A stretch of 64,000 bases of DNA, from assembly GCA_051294905.1 (NCBI GenBank), contig CM119373.1:2170001-2234000 (forward strand). The letters run 5' to 3'. This document shows, piece by piece, positions 42,768 through 64,000 of this stretch. The position numbers were made by a program, and so were the translations under genes. Under the pieces are notes generated by a model that was not told the origin of the DNA, made no database searches, and saw only the letters and a program-made list of their open reading frames with translations. Within the stretch, counting starts at the first letter, position 1, and the number at the start of each line of letters is the position of its first letter. Source of the DNA: Botryllus schlosseri. Lineage: Eukaryota.

Positions 42768-44113
42768 CTCGTAATGCATGTCTGCGGCTTATTGTCTACT
42801 TCAACGACGGCATGGAGCGCGTGCACAGCTCATCTTTACGACATGTAGCCATAATAGGCATAGTTAAGTATATTTCATAAACATCGTCGAAGTCTGGTTG
42901 GAATACAAAATGGAGCAGGTAGCAAGTAAACATTTATTTCACAATGAGATAATGGGCAGTTTTAAGCAGATGAAAGCAACCGAACAGTCCCTTCTCACGC
43001 TGTGTCGATATGCATATGAACTTTTCGAAATGTGCATTTTGCACATATACGAAAGCCATATTGCACGCACAGGCATCACTCTTACGAGTGAAATTGTGAT
43101 AACAACCAAACGAAATACTTTTTGTATCACCATCATGGAATGTATTTTTCTACATTTTTCTTTCAAAATGGTCACAGAGATAAACCCCGCAAACTTGTTT
43201 GTCGAACACTAACCCCCTAATCAAAAGGTCGCTCATATTGAATTCGATCCTCAAGGTATAGATGCACTTCCGTGTAAAACGATTACGATGTTCACTCAAA
43301 AGTACCGACGTCAGGTTATAATACTGAAGCTTGATTTTTCACGTCTAAACTTTTGAATTGTGTGCAGTAAAAGAGTAGCAAAGTTTACGGAACGAATGCA
43401 TATTCCCATATTGAAAATAGCAAGACTTCAAACGTTGCAAGTAAGCAGCACTCATACACGAGTGTTCACTACAAGAACACCTACAATTACACAAATGAAT
43501 ATGCCTTCGAGTGGTAAAGGGGGTGGAAATTTGCATTTGAACTATTACATTCTTAAGGTAATCGCACAATATCAATGAGGTAGGTATTAGTAATGACTTT
43601 CCCATCGCCACTACAGCTTATGTCAAAAGATTAAAGCAATGGGTCCACGTAGACACAATCTGGTAATGCGATTACAGTTAGTTGATTCGCGCGCTAATAA
43701 CAGCGATAGGCCATATGCTGTAATTCCACTAAGCTGTACGCCATCACGTTGCCGCTATGTTTTCTTCACAGAAGGTAGCGGAAAATGATCATGTCATCCT
43801 GCCACTACTATGTGTGCCCCGCGTAAGTACTCGTCAGCACGGTGAGGTATGTTAATTGGCATGGATTTCCCATGCACGCGGTGACATTCTTTTAGTGCTG
43901 TTCTTCTGATTGTTATCCCTGTCTTCAGTTGCCATTCTTTATATTACGAAGATGTCCTTTCATCCCGTGGTCACCCTCTTCGATGTGGATGTTTAGTGGA
44001 AACGGTGGGACGTCACATTCGCTTTTAGGGCAGAACCATTTCAGCTGAAACAGTAAAATGTAAATCGATTTTCAAGTTACTCAATGATACCATGATACAG
44101 TCGAAACCACATA

Positions 44114-44824
44114 CAGTCGACTCCGCTTACGTGAGACACCGGATAACCTGGACAAATGTTTTTTTTTTCGTCAAAAGAAAAATTTCACGTGAAGAACTCC
44201 TGTTCATACGGACACATGATTGCAATTCCTATCGATAGATGCCACAGTACTTCGTTGGTTTGAAATGAGTCATTATAGTAAAACGATGACGATTCATGTA
44301 GTAATTAAATCGACAATGAACTGATACAATGTCGTTTCAGCTTCATGGTCATATTTAATTGGGTGCGATTGCGTGCATCTTGTAGAACAGATTGGTACAA
44401 AAAGTAATGCAGAAAAACATCTATTTCTCACTAAATTGCACGAAGAAAATGTAAACACCCTTTCATTACAGTTTGGCAGTTCATTGCGTTTGCGAGGATA
44501 TCAAAATGTACTATAATTGAGCCTTATATAGGTGTGCTAAACAGGATTTGTTCAATGCTTCCGTATAGAAATACTGTGTAATACAGCTAACCTGAAGGTA
44601 TAGTCAATGTGTGTTTTATGCAATCTGTACCGATTAATGCAGTATGGCGCAACTGCCACTGATTTATTACGCAACAGCACCGTATTTTGAATGCGTTATG
44701 TGCCTTTCAAGCACGATCACGATGCGGAGAATTGATATTCAGCTTAACTCAAACAAAGCCTTCTTCGCTTAATTCAGCCAAAAGTGAGCGGAATCAGACT
44801 GTCCTAATTAGGCGGAGTCGACTG
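44114..44824. mobile_element. Tc1/mariner (pogo/Tigger-like) non-autonomous element
   Basis: TA-CAGTCGACTCCGC...GCGGAGTCGACTG-TA. Confidence 0.85.
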
Positions 44825-45582
44825 TACTGATTTGGGACATTCTGAATTCAATATGAGATTGTTTTAAGAGCAAAATGATTTGCATGGCTAACTTAATCGT
44901 ATGTGAGATGATATTCGAATCAAAAATAGCATCTTCACAGCGAGGAACACACAGAGTTTGCTTTAAGTACTTATACTGTAAAAGCCAATAGTGTGGCGTA
45001 CTCACTAGCCAGAATAGTAGCATTTGCGGTTGAGTTGTTCTCTCGTAAATCTATCAGTCAAATGTTACGCTCATTAGCTCATGCCCTACAGAGGTGCGAT
45101 CAAACGTATTTGTAAGTTAATTGAATGAATATATATCATTGGTACCGTGCATTTTTCGACTGGTCGCGTACATAGTCATGAAGATGTAAGAAAAAATAAT
45201 ACTGGCTTGATTCCTTATTTCCAAATTACCAATCTAAAGTCCAAGAGATATTGTTGCAGTAAAAGTCAAAGTTTAGGCATCGTGCACATGATTTGGGGAC
45301 TGAGCTGATTCATTAAGAGGGTGAATTCGAATCAAATACTTTTTCGAGACATAGCAGCCCAGTTATGACATGCAATTGCCCGAAATATCGGCGATGCCAT
45401 TATTTGTCGCTTATGTTCATTTATAAACTATCAACTACGTTAGGGCACTTGTAAGTCACCTATACCTGTCCACATGCCTTATTTTAAATATGATATAGTA
45501 ATTCCTTAGCATTCCAAAAATAATCGCACTGCTGAGAATCTTTGGCGGTGCAGAGTTAGGGAATTACTGATAGCCTATATAT

Positions 45583-46504
45583 CAGTGGTCGGGAACCTAT
45601 GGCTCGCGAGCCATATATGGCTCTTTTGGGTATAAGATATGGCTCTTTGCCAAATATTTATTTTTGTGTTGAATTGATCAATATTGCAACGAGTTGTTGG
45701 TAAAGTTTAATCACGGCCAAAATAATTATTCTCCTGGCAGTACAAACATGTCTTTGAGAGGTAAAGACAATGTCGTCTTCAGGTTTAGGGGCTCGGACCC
45801 CTTCTTTTCAAAATCATCAAATTTAAGTTACTGTCACGCGGGCGGCCAATATCACTCGCGAATTCTATGTACCCGACTCGAAATCTTGAATTGCGCGATA
45901 CGTTGATTAATCAAAGAGCATAGCAGACACGACGACGCCCATTTCAAAACGCAGTTTTCAAATACGCATTGTCTAACTGATCTACGTCGCGAAATGAACT
46001 GTTGTGAATGTGACAATTACAAACTCGAATTACAAACAGCGCCATAGCTATCCACGTTCTTGATCGGTAAGTATAGCTCTTATCTGTGTAGTACCATCGA
46101 TAAAATGTATACGTGTAGCGCAACGTTATGTTGCCGCCGAATACTTTGAGAAGTCGATAAGTATTTAGATTTTCGTACTCAGTGTGACAGTCACATTCGA
46201 TTAATATCACTTGTAAAAAATTCCAAGCTACATATGAATTGCGTTATCAAGGGTGAGACTTGGCCCGTCTGTTCTATACCTCTCGTTTCGACCTTTATTT
46301 ACGAACAATAAACACCAGAGTATACTGAGAAAATATGGCGCACACGAGGAATCCCATGCAGCGAGCTCGAATTAGTGCTACCATGACGTCATCATTCTTC
46401 AATTGTGACGTAACCGTTGATTGGCATGTATGGCTCTTTGGAAGTTGAGATGGAAAAAATAAGGCCAATATGGCTCTTCAGACAAAAAAGGTTCCCGGCC
46501 ACTG
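45583..46504. mobile_element. hAT (Buster/Charlie-like) MITE
   Basis: TIR CAGTGG(T/C)CGGGAACCT (15/16); perfect TSD CTATATAT; ATGGCTCT subterminal repeats. Confidence 0.9.
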
Positions 46505-46827
46505 CTATATATCCAATTTGAGCTTACGCGCGCCTCCTGGTTACGGCTATTGGCGCGATAATTTAAATACTCAAATCTGAATCTAGTTTTTAATCTACTG
46601 GTTCGAGTCGAATACCAAGAGACCATTCTCTCGAGTACTGAAAATATTCGCTCCTTAGCACTAGCAGTTAATTTATCAAAGAGAAATGTGGTTTCAATAT
46701 AGTTTTCCACTGTGGAAGTCTTAAAACTCGTTTGATCTCATTGTAACATACAAAGCATGTAGTGTGCAGTAGAAAGCTACGCACGTTAGTGCAAATTAGA
46801 TATCCATGCAGTATAGTGATCAAGCCA

Positions 46828-47173
46828 TCACAGAAACCGTCACAGATCCCAATGAAAAGAGGTAGTATGTTCGAAATAATAGAATATTATCCTTAACGTG
46901 ATGCATATATTGCTTTATATTCATAGTGATGGCATAAAATGTGCATATTTGAACCTTCAGCATAGGGATGCATTTGAAACAAACGGTGTTTTAAGACACT
47001 TCACAGAAACCGTCACAGATCCCAATGAAAAGAGGTAGTATGTTCGAAATAATAGAATATTATCCTTAACGTGATGCATATATTGCTTTATATTCATAGT
47101 GATGGCATAAAATGTGCATATTTGAACCTTCAGCATAGGGATGCATTTAAAACAAACGGTGTTTTAAAACACT
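46828..47173. repeat. 173-bp direct tandem duplication (2 copies, 2 substitutions seen)
   Basis: 46828-47000 and 47001-47173 are near-identical by eye. Confidence 0.9.
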
Positions 47174-47447
47174 TTCTTCAAAACATGTTTCAAACAGTGT
47201 TATAAACAAAGGCCTTTTTAATAGAAAACAAGATTGTGATTTTTTAAGTTGCGAAATTATGCCCTAATTGTGTGAAGACTTTCCAGAATACATGTTGTAT
47301 GAGCCTCCGGAAAATTACCACCCGATATAGCAGTTGAATATTCGCGACGTGATGGCTTAAAAAAACAATAAAAACACGTTTTAAAACAAGGGCCTTGTTT
47401 TAAACATGTTTTGTTTCAAATTGATTCTTCTCTCAAATGCAACCCTA
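47136..47447. mobile_element. Family D hAT MITE
   Basis: TIR TAGGG(A/T)TGCATTT; perfect TSD CTTCAGCA. Confidence 0.9.
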
Positions 47448-47744
47448 CTTCAGCATCAATCTTATTCTTATGACGTCATCATGAGTCACACTCGAATCGA
47501 ATCCTAATACTCGATTCTGATTCGAATCACTCAGGTACTCGATTTTCCCAAGACCTTATCTTGATTTATTATCTCATAGAAGTGATTGAAGTGCACCCGA
47601 AAGTTATTTTTTCTTGTCAAAATTAGGTACGGGAAAATTAGTAATTCTGCATACGACGTAGAAGTCCTTTACAAACAGAAGATTCCAGTGAGTAACTGGG
47701 CTTTTGAGCAGTCATAAATGTATGCTTGTTTCAACTACAGCTAC

Positions 47745-48122
47745 AGAGCTCATTGATACGACTGCTGCTCCGGCTCCAACTCCGGCTCCGTTAAATACCT
47801 GCGTGAAAGCTATTTGTTGGCTTAGCCAGTCCGTCTCCGCTGTGAACATGTGACTGTTCTGCTTTCAAAACCCCGCCAACGCAATTAGTTAGTAAAGGAG
47901 ACCCGACGATGCAACATTTACTACTTTTGTGAAAGGTTGTTGCCAAATTATGTGAATTCAGTCTATAGTACCAGAATAGCATCTTATGAAGTACATTGGA
48001 GCTGGAGCTATCCTACAAGCTTTTGAATTTCTCTTGGAGCATTGGCTCCAGCTCCAACTACGGTGAAAATGCACGGCTCAGCAGCTCCGGCTCTTTGCTC
48101 TGGCTCCACCTCCAAAGCCGTG
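47745..48122. mobile_element. MITE fragment with GGCTCC(A/G) hexamer arrays
   Basis: Repeated GCTCCGGCTCCAACTCCGGCTCC motifs ending in a degenerate hAT-like terminus. Confidence 0.4.
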
Positions 48123-49229
48123 GTAAGTATTGCAAATAGATAAAACTACTTGGTTGCGCCGGAAACGTATATGACTTCTTTATTCTTGACATCTGGTGCT
48201 TCTAGACGCGCGATAAATATATTTTGAGCTTGATAAGGGGGTGTCAAACAACTTTTTCAACTACTGATTCTGCTAATCACTCCTTATTGATTGCTAGGCT
48301 CGAAAGCCATTGTGTTCACGGTATTGCGTTGTATCTTTGACGAGTCGTAAAGAGCACACTCTGACTGTTGCCGTTGACATTGCATGTGCTTGTCGCCTTT
48401 TCTTCTCTAGATTGCTGGTTCAGAAAAATGATCCGTTCCGGTTAAACTGGTGAGCAACTTCTGCAGTCGGCGCCAGCAAACACGATAGCTGACATTTCTC
48501 GCGGGCAATGTATACAGCCAATATATCCAACTTGAAGCATGAATATCTAAATTTGAGATTGCTTCTTAGTGTCCTCTCGTATTATATTATTGCGGATCAA
48601 CAAGATACATTGCTTGTCCGACAAAGTCGCGTCGTGGGACGTATGTTGCCAAACCCTGAGTTACGCCGTTAGGAGCCTAACAGTTCCCTCTTTTCCTAAC
48701 AAAAAAATAACGGAAAAATATTGATCACTCGTATCTGAGTCGAAAATTTATCCCTGTAAACTTAGAGAACGCGTATCGTCGTTGATGTGTCACGGGGAGT
48801 TGCAAATCGGAAACAATTGGTAGTGAACACTGAACAGGGTATCGACCTTTACTCATCTAAGGAACACTCGCGCTGATCTTTAAGCGTTCGCGGAACCCCA
48901 AATGTCTGCTCAGTCATTAAAACAGACAGTCCACCACAATACACATGTAATAGGTTACTATATATTACTGATGCACACAATTACGTTTGCATCAGCAAAG
49001 TGTTGAAAGAAAAAAAACATGTTCAAATTCATATTCAATTCAAATCAGTGGGACTTCTACTGCTTCCTGTAATATATCAGCTGAGAAATGCGAGGCTGGG
49101 CAAGGGTCATCGTATTGTTCGTTCAAAACAAAACAGCATGATACAAATTGCTTAATCACATATGAGCTTATAAATACTGCATGGACAGTGGACATATAGA
49201 ATCGTCATTCCAGAAACACGGGGTTTCCA

Positions 49230-49560
49230 TTGCGAATGTCAACTTCCCCAATACGACTTGCCACCACCACAGTCGCAATTTGACTACAGATCGGCCCTAG
49301 TTACCTACAACCAATGGATGCCAAGACAGGCCTCTCATGACAAATCAATGCACCTCTAGCTAGAGAACCCTTGAGACTGTGCCCATAGAAAGGCATGGTG
49401 TCCCTGGATCGCCGATTAAAAGCGCTGGTATAGACATTGTTGTCATGAATATCACTGCCGAACATTTCAAGTGCTGTAATTCTCGAAATGCAATCAGTAA
49501 TGACAGCTAAGACTTCCAATGACTTTGAAAATGTTGATTTAACGTAAGGTGTCGCTACTA
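49230..49560 (-). mobile_element. Degraded LINE apurinic-endonuclease (APE) fragment
   Basis: EVLAVITDCISRITALEMFGSDIHDNNVYTSAFNRRSRDTMPFYGHSL resembles the APE N-terminal motif (DVIAITETWL...YNVYR.DR.RRGGGV..Y), with frameshifted LVVGN and VVLG downstream. Confidence 0.4.
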
Positions 49561-51391
49561 AATTCGGTTGCTGTACATTTCCAGCTGCCTCTTGGTCCCC
49601 ATCTGGTGAGCAGCATAGAACATCACCAAATATATGAGTAGGATTACGAGACTATGTCTTGCCATGCACTCACATCACTCAGAATGAATAGACTGATCAG
49701 TACCTCGAGAGGTCGGAATGATCTCGCAATCTGGATATCAGCGCCAGCGTGCAGAATAGTGTAATAGGTTGCAATGATTGTGCGGCCCAGACACCCACTA
49801 GGTTTATATAAAAGCGTATGCATGCGATTCATGTTCACTGTTCATGTTCACGCACGTTTTATATGTATTTATAAAAGTCCTACATTTTACATCACACAGC
49901 AGCTTGTATGCCGATATGATTCCAGGCGACTTAATATATACCATCTCCACGTATAAATTTATGACCTCCTTCAAACCGTGCGTTGCGACACGGATGATCT
50001 CGTGTCGTCCATTATTGACGTGATTGACCGAACGTAGTCAGGTCACGACAGTTGTATCCAGCTAGGCGACACGCATGTCACACAATTAGGCGTAAAACAA
50101 TTAATACACTGTTGCGAGTAGATAAGGCGCTGACACTTCGGAATTAAGTTCACTAAAATAGGATTAAGCCTTCCAGGTCACTATAGATGAATCAACGCCT
50201 GTTCGGATTCTGTGACACCGAAACTAAACCATGACTGGCGTTGTAACATGTCGGTTGTTCACTATACGCAATTATTGACCATGGCTCAATATTCTGAGAA
50301 AAGTTTTAGTTGTAGAGCAGTGGTTTTAAACTGAGGAACGAGTATCAGTGGTACGCGAAATCATTTGAGATGGTACGAATTAAATGCATGCAAAATTAGA
50401 GTTTTAACCATAGCGATACCATATGTCCTCTTTCAAAAAGATTTGTCCTCTTTCAAGAAGATTTGTCCTCTTTTTTCGATAAAATTAAAATGTCCTCTGA
50501 TGACGCTCAAATGTCCCCTTTTTGCGCATGGCGTCATCGTATATTCCAGTTTTTATGTCTGGTAGTGAAACTTGACAGGAGTGTCCCCTTTCTTGGACCG
50601 AAACCCTATTTTAAAAGATCATTAACGTATTTTTTTTCTAATTCAAGAACCGTCTTCCTCGAATGCCTAGTATAATACTTTATGCGTCATCCGCCCAGAT
50701 CCGCTTGTGGAGAAGAAACAGTCGGAACTATCAAACTGAATCGTGACTTGTTGGTGTGTGTTAAATAAGTAATCAGGGGCGGATTAGCACATTTCTTTCG
50801 AAATTTCCGGGCCCACTTATTTCCTAATCCGCCCATGCTAATAATCCTACGAATATTTGTAGTTGAGTTATTCCGTTAATCTGTTGGTACACAACAAAAT
50901 CATAAAACCTCGAGGCAGTACGAGGCGAGGAAAAGATTGCGAATAACTGTTGTAGATCATCCGAGATTTTGACTTGTGATAGGCAATTCTTATTGAAATA
51001 AATCGAACCTCATTAACCATCGGAGTATGTTACTTTACATTACCACGATGTCAATGAATGACAGATTTACATCGATCTTTTATCCGCTTCTGTGCGTAAG
51101 GACATTTGCAGATTGTACAGGTACACCCCTACATTCAACCAGAATAAATGTTTCCCATTGCTGAATATCACTTTCCAGAGATATTTTAACAATTTCAGCG
51201 AGTAGGCCCGCGTCTCGTGTTACAGTTATTGTTCCAGCGCGCATTGGCAAGAGAGCCACATTGTTGTGCTTGAAACACCACGTCCGGTTGCGAGCGTATG
51301 GTGCCCACGCCGACTGTACAGGGTTGCTGATCGGATCATACCGGTGTAGTTAGTGTCGAGTACTGGCTACAGCTGGTGGACGTGTGGCGCG

Positions 51392-51514
51392 ATGTGGCTG
51401 TGGAGTGTATTTACGCTGGTTTTGGTAGTGAGTATCGTTCGGTCGACGGATTTCGAAAGTGAAAAAGACTACGACAGCGAATTTGGTGAAGAATTCGATT
51501 ATCTTCAAGAACAG
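51392..51514 (+). CDS. M13 (neprilysin-like) peptidase, coding exon 1: signal peptide plus acidic segment
   Basis: ATG MWLWSVFTLVLVVSIVRS-TDFESEKDYDSEFGEEFDYLQEQ, donor CAG|gtaata, phase 0 compatible with the next exon. The link to the M13 exons is inferred from phase and composition. Confidence 0.7.
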
Positions 51515-53190
51515 GTAATATGAGTTAGTCGTTTAGCAAGGGCTTTTTGTCAGAAGTAGAAATAGACCTGTCTCTACAAAACTGGTTCACCGTCAACCGC
51601 GATAACGTCCGCAATCAGAGATTAATCTAGGGACAAGCTTTGAGATTGACAAGCTCTGCCTGTACTATATAATCCAATCTAAAGTAAGGTGTCCATATAT
51701 TAATTATACAGTGCACTGTACATATCCCTTCGGAACATTTACTGTCTCCTCTAAATGGAACAATTAAAATGTCCTATTTTAGGTGAAGTCCTACTATAAC
51801 TGAATAAAATAGCGTACATTAATGGTAGGTAACATCCAATGCTGGTGCGAGAAACGATTTTGAAATTATATGCCACCTTACGGATCACTAATCACGACGA
51901 CATCATAAGTTACGTTTCCTATTCTTGATACGCGATTTTAAAATGACTTCACCAACCTTGACCAAAATGAAATGTTGTACCTTTCTCGCTCAATATTCGC
52001 AGAGGTACTTGAAGTGGTCAGCATTACTATGACCCAAGTAGGTCTGGCAGATCTGAAGCAAGGGCGTGAAAAGTGCCAGAGTAAGATATTTGAAAGCATA
52101 CATTTAGTATAGTAAATAGGAAATGAGTAATCTATTTATGTAATATCGAGATGTAAGTTCTCGGCCACATCAAATGAGTGACGATTCCATTTATTGAGCA
52201 ACATTCGAAAACATATTCTTCTGCCAAGATACAGGGCCTCGTCTCGTTACGTTACGTCTCATCTCGTCTCGTCACGTTAAGGTGATAATTTGATTCGCAA
52301 AAGTGATTCGAAGCAATCCCAAAACCAATCAATACTGTACAAATGCCAAGGTGCAAAAAGAGTGGTTTTGAGTCAAAAACTATATCGATTGAGTGAATAG
52401 GAAAAGTCGGCAAAACGTACTTCTACTACATAGAAGTATTGGAACATGTAGAAAAAATGCTCTAGATAGCAACGCCATTATTATTTATTCTTTGTATCAC
52501 ATAACGTATTGAGCGTTGTCTCAAATGTCGTAATAAATGATTTCAGGGTGATTTCGTGTAACAGTTGCCTAGTAAGCTTTGTAACTTTTTTTTATTTAAT
52601 TAGTGCTTCAAACAGATATCAGACAACTCCTTTAATCGAGTATCGAATAGATCAGTAGACTGCGAATATCCAGGTCATAACCTAAACTGTAAATGTTCAG
52701 AGTAAACTATAGCAAGCGATGCTAATCCGAGAACGCACCAAGGCGCAATATTCTCATGCGCTCATATTCCTATGACGTAAATCACAAGTCCATAAACTTT
52801 GGTATTCCCGTTTCTGTCACATCTATCGAAAAGAAAATTCCGGGTGTGAATTTTGTACGTCTAGAAAATCCCACTATTTGGTTATTCGTCGCGGCAGGCC
52901 TGACCATCTCGCGGATCTACGCGGGAAGTTGTGGAAATGTTGTTTCGGCTGTTTCAATCCTTAGACGGCGTATGTCCAATTACGTTCACTACCACTTGTT
53001 TCGGATCGCGATCTCTCCATGAAACTTTACAAGAAATTTTCCGTTGACGCCATGTAGGTAGATGCGCACTAATAGCAGAAATTGCAAAATTACCGAAATA
53101 TTACCGATGCAGAACAAATTTAGTCGATGAGAAACATCAGTCAACAACTCTACATCATTGTCGATAGCTATAGTTAGGTATGACTCATGT

Positions 53191-53479
53191 CAGTGGTTCC
53201 CACCTTTTTTCTTCATTCCCCACTTCATATTCATTCCGAGCCTTAATTCCCCACTACCCAAAACTCCTATATCCACTTTAAAATAGGATTGCCATATGTT
53301 GAGATGCTGAAAATGGGAAACTTTTTTTTATAAATAACCGCCAATCGCGCATGTCTCTCCGTAAATATGTAGATTGTGATGTATACAATGTTTAACAAAT
53401 GCGTCTATTCCCCCCCCCCCCCCCCGATACCATTGAGGTCTTCACAACTGGGGAATTCTCCGCCGGTTGGGAACCACTG
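53191..53479. mobile_element. hAT (Buster/Charlie-like) MITE in intron 1
   Basis: 12-bp TIR CAGTGGTTCCCA; TSD ACTCATGT/ACTTATGC (6/8). Confidence 0.8.
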
Positions 53480-54954
53480 ACTTATGCTATTACTTCTTAT
53501 GGGGTTGTCGAGTTACCGCAAGTATAATATGGCCACGTTCGCAGTTGGACAACACCTGCAGAAATATCGCGTAATCTATCATTAATTGTAATCGGTATCT
53601 CTTACGAGAAAATTCTCGTTTTAGAAAAAATATGATGTAAAATTCACGCGTTTTTTACAGAATGGGAGAGTTCCAATTTCTGTTGAATTGCAACGTGAAG
53701 CTAGAGCTATCTCCGCCAATATCAAACTTTCGCTATAAGGTGACCTGTGTTCGTTACGCATCAATAGATCATTGACCTCACGATTCTGTTAAACTGTTAA
53801 GTGTCCCTAAATATCTGCGGCTGTCAATCATGCCAAATTTTAATTCTGGCTACGAACATGGTTGCATATTTAATGAATAAGGCTATAGTCAGATGTCTGA
53901 GTAGCGAGTACATGCGTTTTATTGTGTTTCTGTATATGCAGTCTTGTACATTGATATAGTAAAAATGGGAAACGAAGGCTCGAACTGTTTGGATACCTCT
54001 GCATTAGGGCTTCCTCATGTAATTGTATTTGTAGAGGCTGTAATTTCAATCGCCGATAATTACCAGCTAGTTAACAGCATCAAATGGGAACAGCGCAGTA
54101 GAGCTTGAACGCATTTTATAATCATCGGTTAACCATATGAAAGGAAAGATATCGATATAGCAGTGGTTCTCAAACTGGGGGATGTGACAGCATCTGAATG
54201 GAACGCGAAACTCCGTTCATCTGAAAAAAAATTCGCGCCTGGCGCGATTTATACAAATTTCATAATTGTGGCTCTATATCTACTCCGAATTTCAGATGCC
54301 ATCAAACTATCCGCTGGGGTTTGTAGCATTCTGGTTGCATTTTGCATATCATAAAGGGGGGCGTCTCTAAAATAGTTTTGCATTATAGGATTCTCCGGAA
54401 TATGGCGTAAAAGTATATAAAATCGAAACTTGGTGCGACGGATTTCTTCCCAAATAACGTCCCGTAACTTCAGTCACATTACTGCACTGATTTTGAAACT
54501 TCTGACCTTGCTTATACATTTTCTTCGTAATGGTCACATTATTGATGATTCCCGATCACGCAGTCAAGTGCTGTCCCTGTGTGCATACTGTTGCTACGCG
54601 GGCTTGTAATAAAGCCCCTCACCCATGATCATAATTTGCGACTTGGTAGAAGTAGCCGTTGACGACAGTTGAGAACAAGGAATGACATATCGCCATGCAC
54701 CATTTTTCAAACTGGACATTATGACTTAATATGATCCACTACGTCACAATGGATCCATGAAGTCACGTCATATCTTAAAATAATCGACCCCTGCCAACTG
54801 TTATCCACCCCTCTCAAATCTTTATACTATAATCTTGATGGATATCTAGGTGCAACAAATGAAACTTTTTATCACTCTGCACTATATTTGGTCATTTTTA
54901 CCAGGCCGATATTCCTTAATATATATCCGTCGCTGTCGACTTGTATCACGGCCA

Positions 54955-55656
54955 ATTTCAAGGCATTTTAAAACACCGCTTACGCCGATCAGACGGCGAG
55001 GAGAAGCCTGGATTAACCTCCGCGACTCGGGTAGTAATTCTGGAGTCGACCTCAGCCGGGCTCGAGCCCGCAGCCTATTGGTGTTGCCAGGGTTGTAACC
55101 AAGTCAAAATTAAATCTCACTTTTATAGTTTTGATTCGAGTTAAGACGTGTATCATTTTTAATTCAGTACCGATCCAAGTCCGAGTCCAAGTCGGAGAGC
55201 AGTGGGTTCGAGTCACAGTGGTTAGACTCTCGTCTGAGTCCAAGTCATTGTCTTCACTGTCTACTTTCGAGTTCAAGTCATGTTCATTGAAATCTTTTCT
55301 AAACCTTGCTTGATATTGATTGCCGTGCATTGACAATATATTAATTTACTTCACTTTTAATAGTATCTGGTCCTATTTTTTATTTACTAACACTAAGAAA
55401 CGAAATACCAATAATTTGGTAACTTTCATATTTATGGAAATCACAATGAAATTACTGTATTGGCCGTCTGAGTCCGAGTCATATGACTTTGTCAAGACAT
55501 GCGCCTTTTGACAAATTGACTCAAGTCGAGTCAATTTCCGTATTGAAGAAAATGACTCGATTCAAGTCGAGTTACCATCGAATCGAGTCATGAAGCGAGT
55601 CATTACAAGCCTGGGTGTTGCAGCTCTGGATCATACCACTACGCCATTTCATCCCC
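54955..55656 (-). mobile_element. tRNA-derived SINE interrupted by a family A MITE
   Basis: After removing 55088-55613: A-box TGGCGTAGTGG (55646-55636), B-box GGGCTCGAGCCC (55069-55058), then GGCTGAGGTCGACTCC core and CGTAAGCGGTG tail. Confidence 0.75.
55088..55613. mobile_element. Family A hAT MITE
   Basis: TIR CAGG(G/C)TTGTAA; perfect TSD GGTGTTGC. Confidence 0.9.
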
Positions 55657-55686
55657 ATAATCTGACTATATTTTGCGATATACCAG

Positions 55687-55921
55687 AACGAAGCCGATGA
55701 GCATTACTTGAAAAATCAAGATCAATGGTCCGCCGTCGCCAGCGATCTCTTTCTCGAAACGGCAGAAGATGGGGATGAGAGTGACGAGGAGGAATTTGAG
55801 AATGCGCTGTTGGAAGAGATACGAACCGATTGGGCGGAACAATCTCTCGAGACTCGCATTACCGATATGTTGCGGCAGTACGAGGCCGAGTACGGCGTTA
55901 CGAAGCTAAGCCACAAAAAAG
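55687..55921 (+). CDS. M13-like peptidase, coding exon 2: acidic region
   Basis: ataccag|AAC acceptor, G|gtgagc donor; NEADEHY...EDGDESDEEEFENALLEE...KLSHKK; phase 0-1. Confidence 0.75.
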
Positions 55922-57924
55922 GTGAGCGGTTAAATCTGTCGTAGAATAGGCGAGGTAGGTGTAGACGTCGGACAGGGAAATGTTCGTCGGGTCTAATTGC
56001 TGTCGATGGAACACAATAGTTTTGTTCGTCATGTGACAACTATAGTGGCTCTTTTTGTGGTATTGGTGGTATTTCTTGACTCCTGCGGTCTTTGTATCGA
56101 TATTCTCTACTACTATACCAGTACACCACGTCATCTCGTCACCACATGTCGGAAATCGACAGACGATAATCTATAATTTTGGCTCCGTTCGGGAAATAAA
56201 CCAGCGGGAGAAAAGTATCATTGACCTATGTTTTGCATTTGAACATTTTGACGGTATATATGGCCACTACAACAATGATGAATATGTGACGTCGCGTTAT
56301 TAATCGACAAATCATATGAATCTGAGTTGAACTCTGCAACTATAGCATTCGTCCTGCTATTAAGTTCAAATTTATCGAATTTAGAATGTTTCTTCAAGCA
56401 TTACCCGTATGAGGTGTCGTGTGGTCCGAACTAACTGCTTAATATATAGGGACGAATCGGTTTGATACCACTAAATACCCTGATCAGACTTCCCTAATGA
56501 ATATTTATAGCGAACGGGATATATATAAGTCAAATTTATCCGACGGGAAATTGCCATAGCAGCTGTATTCGTGCTACATTGCACTCTAAACAAAAACATC
56601 CATATGTCAAAAACCCTACATGCACCGTTGCGTGCATTACATGTCTACGTAAATAGGCGTAGGCCTATAGTATTGCATCATTCTCGAACAGTGAATGCGT
56701 AATTACCCAGGTTAGTAAATTTCATTCGTATATGGCCGATAAGTCGTAATCTATCGGACTACTGTTTTGATAGATAAGTAGGCCTATTTATTCGCCAATG
56801 CCGAGATTGCACGGAAATGATGTGAATATGTACGAAATCAACTTTGGGATGGAAGTATATCTTGAATGAATTGACGCTAGGACTAGCCTGTATTGAACTG
56901 ACTACATTTGCACTAACTTTGATTGACCAGTAACGTATATCTCTTGATTTGCGACAGTACATGGTTTTATTTCAGACTTGGTTGAGGTTGGAAGCATGCT
57001 ATTTGGGTTATGGATTGATAATATTGCACTGACTATGCCGTCCATCGCCATATATAATATGCCTGGGTGTCTAATGCTCACAGGCAGCTATATATAAATT
57101 ATCCATCATATTGTCTTCCTGCTTCTGTATTTATACATATATTTCTACCAACAATAGTATAAACGTCATGTAATCCTGTATCACGTTGAGAATGACGCAT
57201 TTATTTAATCAGATATGTGATTTCAATAAAGACGCAGTGGCCCTTTAAAGAAAATTGTATCATAACACGGTTTGATTTCTTAATATGACCCGATATGACG
57301 ATAGCTTTCTACTAAGGAAGCTATCCTTTATCACGTTACTGCAACCAATCTAGATCCACGACTGTAGCGCACTTTAAACGTATTGCGACAATGGTGCCAT
57401 TCGGTGCCTTTCGTATAACGTTTTCCAATATACCCACGGTTTCAGTCTCGAGTTACAGGAAGCATTTACCGAACAATGTAATACGCCGGAAAGTCTATGA
57501 ACGGTCATATTTCGAAGGCTTCTGGAAATATATTGCGTAATGTGGGATGAAGCAAAACTTTCTCATGGGGCAGATATCATATTTGTTTCGTGACGGCGGC
57601 CCATTTCTTGCCTATGCTTATGCGATGCACTGCCTTAGTAATGTATATAGCCTCTACTACGAGCTCATCAAACTCAACCACCAATCAGCGACAGAATCAG
57701 ATTGGATTTATCCTTGTTTATCTCATCAATGGCTGCAAGAACATCTCGCAACAAGACAGCGGTAACAAGATTCACGCTAAATGACAACACGTGCGTAACT
57801 AGAACAAAAACTTGACTACTCAAAAGACGGTAGTTAGTTGGCCGTCAATGAACTAGATTGGTAGTTTGTATGATCCGTTCCCGAGCTGCCTGCCAATATA
57901 CAACAAGAACCAAATTTGTACTAC

Positions 57925-58085
57925 GCGTCTGTAACACACCGCATAATCGTATGGCGACGATGATCCTAGTTTAACCCTTCCCATTTGGGTCTGAATACTG
58001 GTGTCGACCTCAGTCAGACTAGACCCGAGGACCCAGTGGAGTTGCAAGGTCGGCGGTTTTCTAAATACCTCCCTATGCGCTCATG
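57925..58085 (-). mobile_element. Degraded copy of the GAGGTCGAC SINE family
   Basis: Aligns to 54960-55087 (ACACCGC...GGCGA...TTAACC...GTCGACCTCAG...GTTGCA). Confidence 0.65.
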
Positions 58086-58162
58086 ACACTTTCTTGTTCT
58101 CCATCCGTATGAGCATTGGTTTAATACAGATCAGTTATTTAGCATCGTTTATCAATTCCCAG

Positions 58163-58381
58163 GTGGATGCAACGCTTTTCGGGGAAGATTACATTCGAAG
58201 CACAGTTGCCAGGATAAGAAAACATTCTTAGGAACAGTGAAGGTCTGTCACGTCACCTGCAAGAAAGGTTACCACCTGAAGAAAGCGATCCCGCATTACG
58301 AATTATGCGGATTGCCCACGAAGTATAGATGGACGTATGAGCTTCGCGGGTATCGCGTCGCTGGAGAAGTTTGCTTGAAAG
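58163..58381 (+). CDS. M13-like peptidase, coding exon 3: 6-Cys sushi/CCP-like module
   Basis: aattcccag|GT acceptor, G|gtgatt donor, symmetric phase 1-1; CNAFRGRLHSKHSCQDKKTFLGTVKVCHVTCKKGYHLKKAIPHYELCGLPTKYRWTYELRGYRVAGEVC shows the C..C..C-x3-C-x2-GY..C..W..C pattern. Confidence 0.8.
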
Positions 58382-59184
58382 GTGATTGAATCTATGCGGG
58401 GTATTTGCTTACCTGCGTATAGTTTTTGTTCGTAATATTCCATTAAAAGCCAAATCAGCTGTTCGTGCTGTTACAAGGAAGCTATATAGCTATCGTGCGA
58501 TATTGGTGTACGGTGCAGTACCAAAGTATTACTAAGATAGAATTCTTGTGGTAGTGTCTAATTACCGCCTACGTCTTGACGGATCAAGGATGTCACAGCC
58601 ACATCCCCGGCTTACATTAGTAAATAATAAAGTCTATATAGATGCAGATAACAGTGGCGTGTAACGCTGAATGAATGGTAATACAATGATATACATTCAC
58701 TCAATTATGATGGAGAGTACCCTATCTCTATCAGATGTTACGTCACTCCACTCAAAGTCGAGCAAATTTCGTATATAACAATTTCCAGTGGTTTTCATAA
58801 AATTCATCCGCATGCTACTTCGGAGCTCTTGTTAGGTTATTAAAATAACGGTAACGCCTTGAGTTGAAATTCGTTGCAATATTTGCATGATCCACATCAC
58901 AAGGATGTCTAGCCTACTATCTTTTGCCTTGCTCAGTCACTTACAGCATGTCATGAGGGAACCAGGTAAATGGCACTTTCTAGTACAATATATTGCATTC
59001 ACTGTTATTCCAATGGGTGTAAATTAGTCAATAAACTAATCCTTGTTGTATACTACGGTCCTGATGGGGTTCTGTACCACCCCAGGAACATGACAGAATT
59101 GTAGTATAAGTGCGAACAGTACCCACCGCACCCCTGAGAAACATCGATAAAGTTTATAGTTGATGGTTCTATTTGACTTTTCAG

Positions 59185-59241
59185 GGAAGCAGACTAAAAA
59201 AATTCCAAAATCTTGCACGGATCCATACTGCGTGGCGACAG
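59185..59241 (+). CDS. M13-like peptidase, coding exon 4
   Basis: ttttcag acceptor; GKQTKKIPKSCTDPYCVAT matches the CxxxxCV.AA start of the M13 ectodomain; phase 1-1. Confidence 0.85.
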
Positions 59242-59303
59242 GTCGGTAATTGTGCCTTACATGAGACAACATAAATGCTACAAATAGCATTCTCTCATTA
59301 CAG

Positions 59304-59468
59304 CGGCGTACTACATGAATAAGATCGACTTCAGCGTGGATCCCTGCAATAACTTCTTCGATTACAGCTGCGGCAAATGGCTTAAAGAGACGCCGTATCC
59401 TGCCACAAGCAACGGGAGACTGATGACCTACTCGATTCTAAGATACAGGGTCAAAAAAGACATGGCAA
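59304..59468 (+). CDS. M13-like peptidase, coding exon 5 (Peptidase_M13_N)
   Basis: AAYYMNKIDFSVDPCNNFFDYSCGKWLK matches the hallmark MD.SVDPCDDFY.YACG.W motif; phase 1-1. Confidence 0.95.
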
Positions 59469-60076
59469 GTCAGTATCACAACGGAACTTATGTGCCATAT
59501 GCACGCTATTGCTACGACGCATAGTTTATCGCTTCGGTTCGAAGAATTAGGTCGCGAGTCACTTTATCTGTTGGCCATTAGGCCACGATAGCCAGTTGAT
59601 AATACCGAACATCATTCGCCATTTCGGCTACTTCAGACAACTCTCATATTCTTGAACATATGAAACCAGGCCGAGTCTAGATCGTTAAAACATATCTGTA
59701 ATTTGTGAGGCTACGAAGCCGGGTGATCCATGATAAAAGTTTGCATAGTCCGCCTTCGTGCCGCTTTTGTTGCGGATTGTGGACTCTACAGATTTAACTT
59801 GACGACCTTACGCAGAGAAAAGGATTTCCATGAAGTTGTACGATCTCCCTTCTGAAGCCGCGTTTAAGCTTAATTTGACTGTTCAAATTCGTTCATTTTT
59901 ATATAGAAGGATATTTTGAATATTAAAGATAATTTAGCAGTATTTCAGTTAGTTTGGCAATATTTCACGAAATATTACGCACCCATCAGAGCCTTGCCGC
60001 AGTTGTGAACCCTGGTGATTTGGAAGAACTCGATTGCGTTTTGCTATTGTCGACTTATTGTATACCACATTTTCAG

Positions 60077-60160
60077 AGGTTCTCTCGGTGCCTATCAAAA
60101 AATCCGATATATCTGCGGTGAAGAAGACCAAGACAGTGTATCAATCGTGTATGGAAACAG
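60077..60160 (+). CDS. M13-like peptidase, coding exon 6
   Basis: ttttcag|AG...ACAG|gtatgg; SAVKKTKTVYQSCME matches the A..KAK..Y.SCM motif. Confidence 0.9.
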
Positions 60161-60408
60161 GTATGGCCACATCGATAATAAAAATTCCCGATGTCATCAT
60201 TAGGTATAGCACTGGAGCTATCTGTTTTGCTACGCCCTTACAGAAATGAGTGCGTATTCTCATCTTAATAGAGGTACACGAAAAAATAACCTACCCTTAA
60301 AATATCGTTGTATGAATCAAGCACCTCAAGTATGTGAATTGCACAGAGCACACTCTTTTGGCTTGAGTTTGTACACAAGACTTCAAAGTAATCCGTCTTT
60401 CCTTACAG

Positions 60409-60605
60409 CTCGCATCAACGCCCTTGGTTCTAAGCCGCTGCTCAAAATATTGAAGGGCGATATCGCCTGGCCTGTCCTTGATAAAACCTGGAAGGAATGC
60501 GACTTTGATTTCGCAGCGACCTACGCTACTCTGAAAGGCAAGTTCAACAACGACATCATGTTCACGGTCAGAGTTGGACAATCGTTCGGTAGCCACGTTT
60601 TGCAG
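60409..60605 (+). CDS. M13-like peptidase, coding exon 7
   Basis: ccttacag|CT...CAG|gtaaga; ARINALGSKPLLKIL...WPVLDKTW...FDF is typical of neprilysins; phase 1-0. Confidence 0.9.
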
Positions 60606-60712
60606 GTAAGACAGATACCATTTACTTTCCTACATTCTCTCTGTAAAATTCAGCACGGTTATTGAAAGATACCTTCATGAAATGCTCTGGTATAGCCTAG
60701 TAGTGTATATAG

Positions 60713-61266
60713 CAGGGTGGAAAGTTACAAGTCACAAGGTTCCGAGTCACAAGTCGATCTTACTTTTATAGTTTTGACTTGACTCAAGTCGAGTCATTTT
60801 CAATTCACCACCGAGTCAAGTCCGAGTTCAAGTCAGCTAGTAAAGGGTCGAGTCTGAGTCATTGTGTTTTGATTCGTGTCCGAGTCCAAGTCATTATGTT
60901 CACTGTTCCGTTCAACCCACTTTTATCAACTCTGCTTGAGTGATATAGAATGGCTCGCATTCATAATATCGTAATTTTCCTCAGTCTTAACAGTTTCTAG
61001 GCCTATTTTCCAAGTAACAGGACTGATATACGAAATACCAATAATGTGCTAACTTCACTAGTCTTTGAAGGTACAATGAAATGTCTGTCTTCTTGGCCGT
61101 CCTGGTCTCGAGTCATACGACACGGCTGGAGTCATGCATAATGACTCAAGTTCAGGTCGAGTCAATACAAAAATTGACTCGAGTGGAGTCATTTTACGCA
61201 TTAGAAAAAATGACTCGAGTCAAGTCGAGCAACCAAAAAATCGCGACTCGAGTCATTACAAATCTG
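60713..61266. mobile_element. Family A hAT MITE in intron 7
   Basis: Perfect TSD GTATATAG; GACTCGAGTC arrays. Confidence 0.9.
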
Positions 61267-61369
61267 GTATATAGTTACTAAACGCTTATTGTAATAAATA
61301 AAGCTGAAATGAAACTATCCTTATAAACGCTTTGAATTGTCGTCGGTCAAAGTTATTATATTATTTCAG

Positions 61370-61429
61370 ACTTGGAAAGGAAAGACGTCGCTGCCGTACC
61401 AATACTATATCTTCGACAGATATTCCTCG
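61370..61429 (+). CDS. M13-like peptidase, coding exon 8
   Basis: tatttcag|ACT...TCG|gtgagc; TWKGKTSLPYQYYIFDRYSS sits at the position of the LGLP..YY motif; phase 0-0. Confidence 0.85.
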
Positions 61430-62859
61430 GTGAGCAAAGCTATAGAGTTTAAATGCAATTTAATACATAAATACATGAAGTTTTGATCGTGCTATTCTGA
61501 TAACCCATACTTCCCCGTTATTAAAAAACGAATCGGGTCAGATATACGTTGAAGGGGGGATAAGTGAGGGGGTCGTGATACATCGTACCGACAAAGACAA
61601 CAGATAATTGAAATCTGGTATGTCAGTAGTTTAAAAATTAAATGTGGTTGAGGTGTCGCATATATTGTTTTTAGTTACTCGGAGGTTTCAAATTTCGATT
61701 TTGAAATGCAGAGTGTATCTAAATGATACGACAAATGCTTTGAGTAAAGCCAGATTGTAAAGTATCAATGAACAGATGGATTTGTTTAAAATGTGATGTA
61801 ACCAGTGCAAAAATCATCATGCTTGATCAAGCGCATATCGAGCTGGGTTGTTCTTTTCAAAATGAACCGACATGTGCGATTGTCATAAATACATTCAGTT
61901 ACCATAGTAAAGGGGCTATTTCGCACAGCTGTTATGACAATCTCACGCGTAAAGGTGATACAAACATACACCAAAACTACATGCTGCATTATAAACGATA
62001 AGCACAAGACGTTTTGATGTGAAAACTGTCAAGCAGTAATGGATGTAATCTAGAAACATTACCAAATGATATAAACAATGTTTACAAGTGGACCATTCAT
62101 TACGTGGCGCAAGTAGTCGAAGTAGAAGTTTATACAGCCATCTTTGTAAATAGTATCATATAAGTATAAATACAATCCCAGATCGTGGTTTCACTTCCAA
62201 TAAAACGGAAATTCACATGGTCTACAACAGTGTTTCCGAACCATGTCGCTAGCGCCCCCTGAGGGAATTTGGATTTTAAAGGGGCGGAAACACTGAGCGG
62301 CGATATGAGAGGCGCTATGACATCACGGGGCGCCAAAGATAACGGCGCTACGCAGTACAGATGATAGTAGGCCTATAGTTGTCATGGGGTTACAAAGTTC
62401 AACTGTTCTATTTATGCTTTGGATATCGTTGGAGATTTCATTCATTCTTTCCAAGCAAAATTCATCAATTCTCCAAAATTTCCGTCGCATCCGTACTCAA
62501 CAGATATTATAAGAACTTCGATTTGATCCCAAAAATAGTGCATACAATTATTAGATGGTCATCATGCGCGATTCCGGTGAGAAATATCTCCAATCATCAA
62601 GCCCAAGCCAAAAAATATCGACCGAACTTGGACGTCTACCCTATCATCTTTAGTACAGTATTTAAACTACGCGGGCGTCAAACCATGAAAGTATCCAAAA
62701 GAGGGCGCTGTCAGGAAAAGTTTAAGAATCACTGATCTGCAGATTCACTATTATGCAATCAAACACTTGATTCGATGATATGATGCTGATAACTGTCTAA
62801 GCATCTTCAATGTACAAAATCTGACACTAATCCATCCTCCCGTCGTTTGATATCTTCAG

Positions 62860-63045
62860 AAAAAGGACGCGTACTTCTCCCTGATGAAGGACATCGCGGT
62901 CATGCTTGGGGCTGACCGGCAAACGGCTGAGAGTGATATGCGGGCTGTGCTGGACTTTGAGAAACGGATCTCGCTGCTGAAAGCTCTTGATTTGGATTTC
63001 TATTCGCAAAGGACTCTCGCACAAATGAACATGGACATACCGGGA
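62860..63045 (+). CDS. M13-like peptidase, coding exon 9 (gene continues beyond the window; HExxH not seen)
   Basis: tcttcag|AAA...GGA|gtaagt; AYFSLMKDIAVMLGADRQTAESDMRAVLDFEKRIS is a typical M13 helix motif. The nine exons total 1326 nt, 442 codons in one frame. Confidence 0.9.
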
Positions 63046-63346
63046 GTAAGTCTACCTTACAGCGGTCGGTAGATTAACATGGCGATTAACATATCTTACA
63101 GCACACAATGAAGCGCCTTGATTCGGAACATTTATGGGGCGTGTAATGGCGCTTCGATTACGTGGGCCGTTTCGCGCAGTTGATGCGTTTTGTGTTTCGA
63201 CAAGATTGACACTGTATATCAGGGCGTGCAATTTCTGCAGTCGGCGGGCCGGACATACGAAATTGAAGTACTTGGCGGGCCGGATTCCTGAATCGATACA
63301 TTAATCGTTTATTCATCCACCTATACTATGAATAAATCGTATTTAA

Positions 63347-64000
63347 TAGGGATGGTGTGAACCTCTGAAAGGTTCAGGCTCGTGTAAACGCGAACCTGTT
63401 TGAAAGGTTCTGTGTGGACGATAATGTGAACCTCATGACGTCACGTGAAATCATATTGCTAACTCCCACCCTACATTTCACTGAAGTGATAGCCTCGCGA
63501 CGACTCAGGCCACATAATGCCACAATGCTGATGTACATATATTCACGGTTCAATCATCCCCAAATGTATCAGCCGGGGCAATCAAGTGATATAATAATCC
63601 CCTAAAATCAATATCTTTCGTCGCTTTACCAACAATTTCGACGAGGACTTGCAAGGGAATATAAACCTACGCCTTGACGGTCGAGGCCAGGCCGGACATT
63701 GTATTCGGCGTCTGAGTATAATTGCTACGTTAATATTGAGCAGAGTGCAGAACGGGTTTCTGTACATGCTACCGATATTATCCCTTTCACAAGTCACACA
63801 ACAGTAGCCAACATCCCAATCGCACTGATATGGTTTTCATGATACAATAAAAATATGAAATCAAGATTGACCCCGTACGCCTGCTAGATTTTTAACATCA
63901 GACAATGATATCAATTTCATTGATTGGTTGAATGAGCATCATTCGCTGACTACCTACATCTGGTGCATTTCGCTCTTGATGTTTTGTTATTGTGGGTCAA
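63347..64000. mobile_element. Second copy of the TAGGGATG hAT derivative (runs off the window)
   Basis: Collinear with the reverse complement of 14311 down to about 13700; relic DINFIDWLNEH..DYLHLVHFALDVLL resembles the hAT dimerisation domain. Confidence 0.75.

Follow-up and report, generated by a model that had tools for sequence, protein, structure and literature searches.

We analysed a window of 64,000 nucleotides of the Botryllus schlosseri genome (G000:C3:2170001-2234000 of a 495-Mb assembly), near whose end a gene for a predicted M13 peptidase with an unusual N-terminus begins. The gene starts at position 51392 of the window on the + strand and ends beyond it, at G000:C3:2236477, and its 11 exons join into an uninterrupted product of 876 residues. 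A sequence-only reading of this DNA had proposed the exons between 51392 and 59468, with a signal peptide, an acidic stretch and a six-cysteine module on a phase 1-1 exon ahead of a peptidase ectodomain. All of these are in the sequence: exons 1-5 were found with canonical splice sites (AG/GT) and in the phases proposed, and spliced together they encode the putative signal peptide, the acidic stretch, a six-cysteine piece of 72 residues, a lysine-rich linker and then CTDPYCVATAAYYMNKIDFSVDPCNNFFDYSCG. The rest of the gene was located by family profile searches of the whole genome, which led to a 395-aa open frame just beyond the window end. Exons 6-11 were defined by tblastn with relatives, inspection of splice sites and a motif search for one short missing exon.

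All exons lie on the + strand. Exon 1 (51392..51514, phase 0-0) supplies the ATG, the probable signal peptide MWLWSVFTLVLVVSIVRS and the start of the acidic region with ESEKDYDSEF, and is followed by a GT donor at 51515; the orthologues described below start like it. Exon 2 (55687..55921, phase 0-1) completes the acidic region, which is probably disordered, and adds a helical segment that is conserved (ALLEEIRTDW...LRQYEAEYG), and exon 3 (58163..58381, 219 nt, symmetric phase 1-1) encodes the six-cysteine module, probably a divergent complement control protein (CCP, or sushi) domain of selectin type. Exon 4 (59185..59241, phase 1-1) encodes the lysine-rich linker together with the M13 ectodomain's first conserved cysteine pair (CTDPYCVAT), and Peptidase_M13_N starts on exon 5 (59304..59468, phase 1-1; AAYYMNKIDFSVDPCNNFFDYSCGKW...). 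The ectodomain continues through exon 6 (60077..60160, phase 1-1; ..AVKKTKTVYQSCMET), exon 7 (60409..60605, phase 1-0; ARINALGSKPLLKIL...GSHVLQ), exon 8 (61370..61429, 60 nt, phase 0-0; TWKGKTSLPYQYYIFDRYSS) and exon 9 (62860..63045, phase 0-0; KKDAYFSLMKDIAVMLGAD...DIPG). Past the window end follow exon 10 (G000:C3:2234519-2234646; L001:519-646) and exon 11 (G000:C3:2235301-2236477; L001:1301-2477), the latter with the motifs NAFY, HETTH and ENIADNGG and the stop codon. Exon 8 was identified by the motif search, its junction and a gapless alignment to the Styela orthologue; another candidate at about 61800-61860 (LDQAHIELG) was dropped because its splice phases did not fit. No open reading frame suggestive of an upstream coding exon was seen in 44000-51400, and an Rfam scan of 51000-64000 gave no match.

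Public sequencing runs were aligned to one stretch of the gene, 55650-61500, which takes in exons 2-8, with exon 1 and exons 9-11 outside it. A 903-nt contig from run X1 and a 1151-nt contig from run X3, which come from different studies, skip exactly the proposed introns, all with GT..AG ends. The junctions they contain are 55921|58163 (X1 only), 58381|59185, 59241|59304, 59468|60077, 60160|60409 and 60605|61370; the X1 contig spans 55684-55920 and joins exon 3, and the X3 contig spans 61367-61429. Intron depth over the stretch is zero except at a repeat. Exact intron skipping together with this zero depth places the acidic, cysteine-module and M13 exons in one mRNA, with no hidden exon between them. 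Two junctions of the sequence-only reading, 55921-58163 (X1) and 58381-59185 (X1 and X3), are thus confirmed, and the separate transcript to which, by its alternative, the first three exons would belong is excluded for exons 2 and 3, exons 2-8 being in one mRNA. The exon 1-2 junction (51514|55687) is supported only indirectly: the X1 contig has 34 extra letters 5' of exon 2 that do not match the intron, words of exon 1 are present in the transcript-type runs X12, X3 and X1, and the Styela orthologue aligns across the junction without a gap. Over exons 2-8 the transcript contigs differ from the genome at 21 positions, 16 of them synonymous and the other five conservative. Among raw-read RNA runs, X21 had no reads on the stretch and X24 had reads on the intronic repeat only. 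The locus is a single-copy, expressed ascidian gene.

Intron 7 contains a repeat resembling a miniature inverted-repeat transposable element (60778..61229), with 23-nt terminal inverted repeats and GACTCGAGTC palindromes, that lies outside the gene product. In transcript-type contigs its word depth climbs to about 10,000, and the inner 405 nt are missing from many copies elsewhere (joints 60800 to 61207).

The peptidase part is catalytically intact, judged by its motifs. Exon 5 matches PF05649 (Peptidase_M13_N) positions 1-39 (E 1.2e-7, Pfam), and the terminal exon matches PF05649 263-380 (112 bits) and PF01431 (Peptidase_M13) 1-203 (207 bits). All M13 motifs are present, with NAFY at 667, HETTH at 709, ENIADNGG at 771 and a C-terminal CIIW; the HExxH and ExxxD motifs that the sequence-only reading had expected downstream are therefore found as HETTH and ENIADNGG. 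Among solved structures, neprilysin and ECE-1 come nearest (E 1e-86 to 1e-91). From its motifs and domains, the product is predicted to be a catalytically competent M13 zinc endopeptidase.

Within the M13 family, the gene falls with PHEX. An exhaustive protein search with the terminal exon returned a 79% identical fragment first and then a Ciona savignyi protein at 61%, and the same 395-residue query was 46% identical to turtle PHEX. A further search returned RefSeq entries named 'PHEX / PHEX-like' from Ciona intestinalis (926 and 840 residues), Styela clava (884) and Clavelina lepadiformis (920), and below these about 100 vertebrate PHEX; after the tunicates, the best database matches were all vertebrate PHEX. 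We built a maximum-likelihood tree that also took in named NEP, MMEL1 and ECE-like proteins and mollusc, arthropod and coral M13 proteins. This tree unites the tunicate proteins with vertebrate PHEX and amphioxus PHEX-like in a single clade (support 100/99), with the tunicates sister to vertebrate PHEX (98/93) and the studied protein adjoining that of Styela; the branch to the module-bearing tunicate clade is long (0.68). By this placement the gene is assigned to the chordate PHEX clade, so that the 'neprilysin-family' label given earlier holds in that the product is an M13 peptidase and is narrowed to PHEX specifically. Bland et al. 2008 had placed two Ciona genes with PHEX and mentioned no N-terminal peculiarity (PMC2259306). 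The Ciona savignyi protein P0016, whose database model is N-terminally truncated, branches more deeply within the PHEX clade, as a third tunicate lineage; in the Botryllus schlosseri genome it matches the studied gene best, and no separate counterpart was seen there.

Other M13 genes of the genome, NEP/ECE-like, lie at C5:21.98-22.06 Mb, C10:11.48 Mb and C14:0.35 and 11.18 Mb, those on C5 resembling a tandem cluster. None of the genes on C5, C10 and C14 has the cysteine module. Exon 11 of the studied gene (392 codons, covering the end of M13_N and the whole catalytic domain) holds the entire 3' half of the gene in one exon, whereas matches to the other M13 genes are split into pieces of about 40-70 residues, which suggests that the studied gene has lost introns from its 3' half.

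The N-terminal architecture is shared by other ascidians. Styela P0156, the two Ciona paralogues P0155 and P0158 and Clavelina P0159 all have a hydrophobic stretch, a D/E-rich region and a six-cysteine module, followed by the first cysteine pair of the ectodomain. The module has 23 invariant columns across the five orthologues and no gaps relative to the studied copy. In the M13 part the four proteins are 49-60% identical to the studied one, and in the module 42-56%; the Styela orthologue aligns without a gap over 684 residues from the linker to the C-terminus. When a hidden Markov model (HMM) of the module was run against 271 gathered M13 proteins, it matched only the five ascidian proteins, and ten other M13 proteins with long N-termini contained no extra Pfam domains. 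On these alignments the architecture appears common to four ascidian genera; the sequence-only reading had taken it to be specific to its own lineage, which does not hold at the level of the species. The four orthologues are already in RefSeq as 'PHEX / PHEX-like' predictions, in which the M13 domains alone are annotated and the module is unnamed.

Several searches for further occurrences returned nothing usable. In word-indexed protein searches, whose word and length rules limit what can be found so that absence is not implied, the Styela N-terminal region retrieved only itself and the module alignment matched none of the proteins of 40-130 residues. An Atlas search with the N-terminal 260 residues of the Styela protein gave no usable match, and no usable upstream sequence was found for the DNA encoding the Ciona savignyi protein and the 79% relative P0001. 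Searches of the literature on PHEX with Ciona or ascidians and on neprilysin with sushi domains found no paper describing the architecture, in line with the earlier statement that no described fusion of CCP and M13 was known.

We then considered whether the six-cysteine module is a CCP domain. The consensus cysteines, the invariant tryptophan and the aromatic-x-C-x2-G-Y/F-x-L core of CCP are present in order, and the spacing after the fifth cysteine is longer. Language-model features linked the module to Sushi clusters with a score of 0.93 (70 of 100 matches). As a comparison profile we used 18 sushi exons of the same genome. Against it, hhalign gave a probability of 69-71% (P 4e-5) on the C-x3-C-x2-GY-x-L core, and in global mode all six cysteines and the tryptophan aligned with the six-cysteine sushi subtype. 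The real alignment scored 25.9, whereas none of 70 column shuffles exceeded 14.7 and the reversed alignment reached 14.5. The module was also modelled with AlphaFold2 from the five-sequence alignment, template-free. In an exhaustive fold comparison of this low-confidence model with 48,161 PDB chains, the first 39 ranks were almost entirely CCP modules (Z 2.9-4.8, with 50-58 residues aligned), including those of CD46, SPICE, factor H, PAPP-A, DAF, MASP-2, IL-15R-alpha and beta2-GPI, and the top match was the E-selectin short consensus repeat (SCR; Z 4.8, 56 aligned). The best Foldseek row was the same E-selectin chain, and selectins were top in both PDB and Swiss-Prot, although these rows were weak. 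The module occupies a single symmetric phase 1-1 exon, which is usual for CCP but not defining, and reads confirm both junctions of this exon.

The main alternative is that the module is a tunicate-specific disulfide-rich domain of another fold, whose likeness to sushi in cysteine spacing and GY-x-L is convergent. Several results weigh on its side and against a CCP identity. With Pfam Sushi (PF00084) and Sushi_2, none of the five modules gave a match, although E values up to 10 were allowed, and phmmer of the module against PDB sequences found no match. The AlphaFold2 model is all-beta with a predicted local distance difference test (pLDDT) score of 61 and a predicted template modelling (pTM) score of 0.42, which is low confidence, and taken by themselves the fold-match scores are low (Z no higher than 4.8; Foldseek E 0.73). 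The local hhalign match covers only 36 columns, and the C-terminal half has a spacing unusual for CCP (Cys-x7-Trp and Trp-x13-Cys) and 8-9 extra residues. Although the genome contains more than 1000 candidate sushi exons, none is a paralogue of the module. On the other hand, language-model features, a profile score well above composition-matched shuffles and the fold ranks form three partly independent lines that all lead to CCP, and the agreement of six cysteines and a tryptophan with six-cysteine sushi exons of the same genome, on a single phase 1-1 exon, points the same way. We consider a separate fold unlikely and a divergent selectin-type CCP strongly favoured. The sushi identification made earlier is upheld to this extent by the profile, language-model and fold comparisons; it is probable rather than proven, because Pfam is negative in all five orthologues and the model reaches a pLDDT of only 61.

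The origin of the module was examined by running its HMM against the whole genome, where it found its own exon only and no donor gene or paralogue. As the module is single-copy among more than 1000 candidate sushi exons, no donor is traceable. The exon-shuffling gain suggested by the sequence-only reading fits the phase 1-1 exon but is not shown. The genome's sushi exon complement is very large, with 1067 first-look candidates, and 86 of the 150 that were scored reached E <= 1e-8. Dense sushi arrays lie on contig 4 (for example C4:23.70-23.91 Mb and C4:0.26-0.34 Mb), and many exons of the complement are of the six-cysteine subtype.

Ahead of the module, hydropathy does not give the type II membrane topology that is typical but not universal in M13. 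The only hydrophobic stretch in the 876 residues is the N-terminal 15, at residues 2-16; nothing else reaches 1.6 in a 19-residue window. The anchor-encoding exon that the sequence-only reading had considered was thus found neither between exons 2-8 nor as a hydrophobic stretch elsewhere in the product. In contrast, turtle PHEX and amphioxus PHEX-like have a tail of 15-65 residues followed by a strong 19-residue hydrophobic window of 2.9-3.3. Small residues occupy positions -3/-1 in all five ascidian orthologues (VRS, VQA, CQA, VVA and SNA), and MWLWSVFTLVLVVSIVRS is probably a signal peptide cleaved before TD.

A different interpretation of this stretch is that it remains uncleaved as a signal anchor, giving a near-tailless type II ectoenzyme with the acidic region and the module as its stalk. 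M13 enzymes are typically type II (PMC2259306), and the N-terminus of Ciona P0158 is more hydrophobic, reaching 2.3 in a 19-residue window. However, the hydrophobic core is only about 15 residues long, starts at residue 2 and has no positively charged tail, the small -3/-1 residues are present in 5/5 orthologues, and two of the orthologues stay below 1.6 in a 19-residue window, where true PHEX anchors reach 2.9-3.3. These features make an uncleaved anchor improbable.

The acidic region follows the signal peptide at residues 19-118 and contains 33 D/E against 7 K/R in 100 residues. Across the ascidian orthologues it measures 63-146 residues with 27-35% D/E, and its conservation is low (24-33% identity, with indels). 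Directly after the signal peptide it begins with the motif ESE-x-(D/E)-YDSE, which in the studied gene is at 51451-51480; a tyrosine flanked by acidic residues, as in this motif, resembles a tyrosine-sulfation site. In a full-length model of the Styela protein the M13 part has a pLDDT above 90, whereas residues 1-138 are mostly below 50, with the first 83 below 50, two helices at 81-118 reaching about 50 (low confidence) and the module's central hairpin 66-74. The N-terminal region is accordingly predicted to be flexible and the acidic tail is probably disordered.

We also weighed a pro-region, formed by the acidic region alone or together with the module. It would be a pseudo-substrate for an enzyme preferring acidic P1' residues and would occupy or shield the active site until its removal or displacement. 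D/E make up 27-35% of the tail in every orthologue, basic residues precede the module's first cysteine in 5/5, and KR sites occur in the Ciona and Clavelina tails, all of which would suit such a role. No proprotein-convertase site is conserved, however, and the Styela model leaves the tail off the enzyme, with pLDDT mostly <50 and two helices at ~50; a region that is undocked in the model gives no support for auto-inhibition. The tail is moreover serine-poor, unlike ASARM, and other M13 enzymes need no pro-region. We therefore regard a pro-region as a poor prospect.

Taken together, we estimate a probability of about 0.75 that the gene encodes a soluble secreted peptidase of the PHEX clade whose type II N-terminus has been replaced by a signal peptide, an acidic tail and a divergent CCP. 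Besides the doubts about the module set out above, three points count against this proposal. Signal cleavage was judged only by hydrophobic length and the -3/-1 residues. Reads show neither the junction of exons 1 and 2 nor the three junctions at the 3' end, the latter being based on splice signals, reading frame and orthologue alignment. In the Styela full-length model, the N-terminal region is not docked on the enzyme, so that it offers no structural hint of function.

Under the proposed replacement, the sampled ascidians would have exchanged an ancestral type II N-terminus, whose cytoplasmic tail and signal anchor persist in amphioxus and vertebrate PHEX, and the exchange would be placed in an early ascidian or tunicate ancestor. 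The new parts would be a signal peptide that can be cleaved off, a stretch of some 100 residues that evolves fast, is about one-third D/E and contains a helical segment, and one CCP module, which lies immediately ahead of the ectodomain's first conserved cysteine pair. The protein would then be soluble and secreted. The module has been conserved about as well as the catalytic domain, which suggests that it binds something and so localises the enzyme; with the anchor lost, localisation or the binding of a partner may have passed to the module. For the acidic tail, binding of cations or basic partners is conceivable, as is modulation of the active site. The roles in immunity, matrix or peptide-hormone processing put forward by the sequence-only reading are hypothetical. 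Human PHEX strictly prefers acidic P1' residues (Campos 2003) and binds acidic ASARM peptides (both cited in PMC2259306). The substrates of the ascidian enzyme may be extracellular peptides, perhaps with acidic residues favoured at P1' as in vertebrate PHEX. A more specific version, in which the CCP tethers a secreted PHEX orthologue to a partner in tunic, blood or matrix and the acidic tail acts in cis as a pseudo-substrate or inhibitor of an active site that favours acidic residues, so building a regulated, ASARM-like interaction into the enzyme of a boneless chordate, seems to us rather far-fetched.

Loss of PHEX causes X-linked hypophosphataemia, and its natural substrates and its role before bone are poorly understood. 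In the closest invertebrate relatives of vertebrates, a PHEX-clade enzyme appears to have been retained but deployed differently, as a secreted protein in which a CCP and an acidic tail replace the anchor. Since ascidians are boneless, the substrates of vertebrate PHEX may not apply to them, and Ciona offers a tractable animal for the role of a PHEX-type enzyme outside the skeleton. The gene would also be a case of N-terminus replacement by addition of a module on a phase 1-1 exon, and its module is an example of a domain conserved across four ascidian genera that is invisible to Pfam. The architecture is new, but its importance is moderate: it represents an architectural novelty and not a new kind of system, and would be moderately surprising to an M13 specialist.

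Compared with known systems, the module is closest to the six-cysteine CCP (SCR) of selectins, with the E-selectin SCR as its best structural match and with GY-x-L, the tryptophan and the phase 1-1 exon in agreement. Its first four cysteines (C-x12-C-x12-C-x3-C) are spaced nearly as in six-cysteine sushi exons of the same genome (C-x12-C-x10/12-C-x3-C), whereas its second half is longer than in CCP, where the corresponding spacings are about C-x5-W and W-x5/6-C, and it falls below the Pfam threshold. It is also single and fused to a peptidase, unlike the tandem arrays in which CCPs occur.

Among soluble M13 enzymes, mammalian SEP (NL1, MMEL1) is released by cleavage of a type II precursor, whereas the studied protein encodes its putative signal peptide directly. 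To our knowledge, neither SEP/NL1/MMEL1 nor Drosophila NEP2 has an added extracellular module. These enzymes resemble the proposed one in being secreted within an otherwise membrane-bound family (PMC2259306), but they belong to other clades (our tree; PMC2259306). The RefSeq proteins P0156, P0155, P0158 and P0159 are orthologues or co-orthologues with the same full architecture, varying in the length of the acidic region (63-146 residues). Vertebrate PHEX (MEROPS M13) is in the same clade, is the best named non-tunicate match and shares the M13_N and M13 domains and the catalytic motifs. It differs as a type II membrane protein, about 750 residues long, that keeps its anchor and cytoplasmic tail, where the studied protein has instead a probable signal peptide, an acidic tail and the cysteine module, about 190 extra residues in all.

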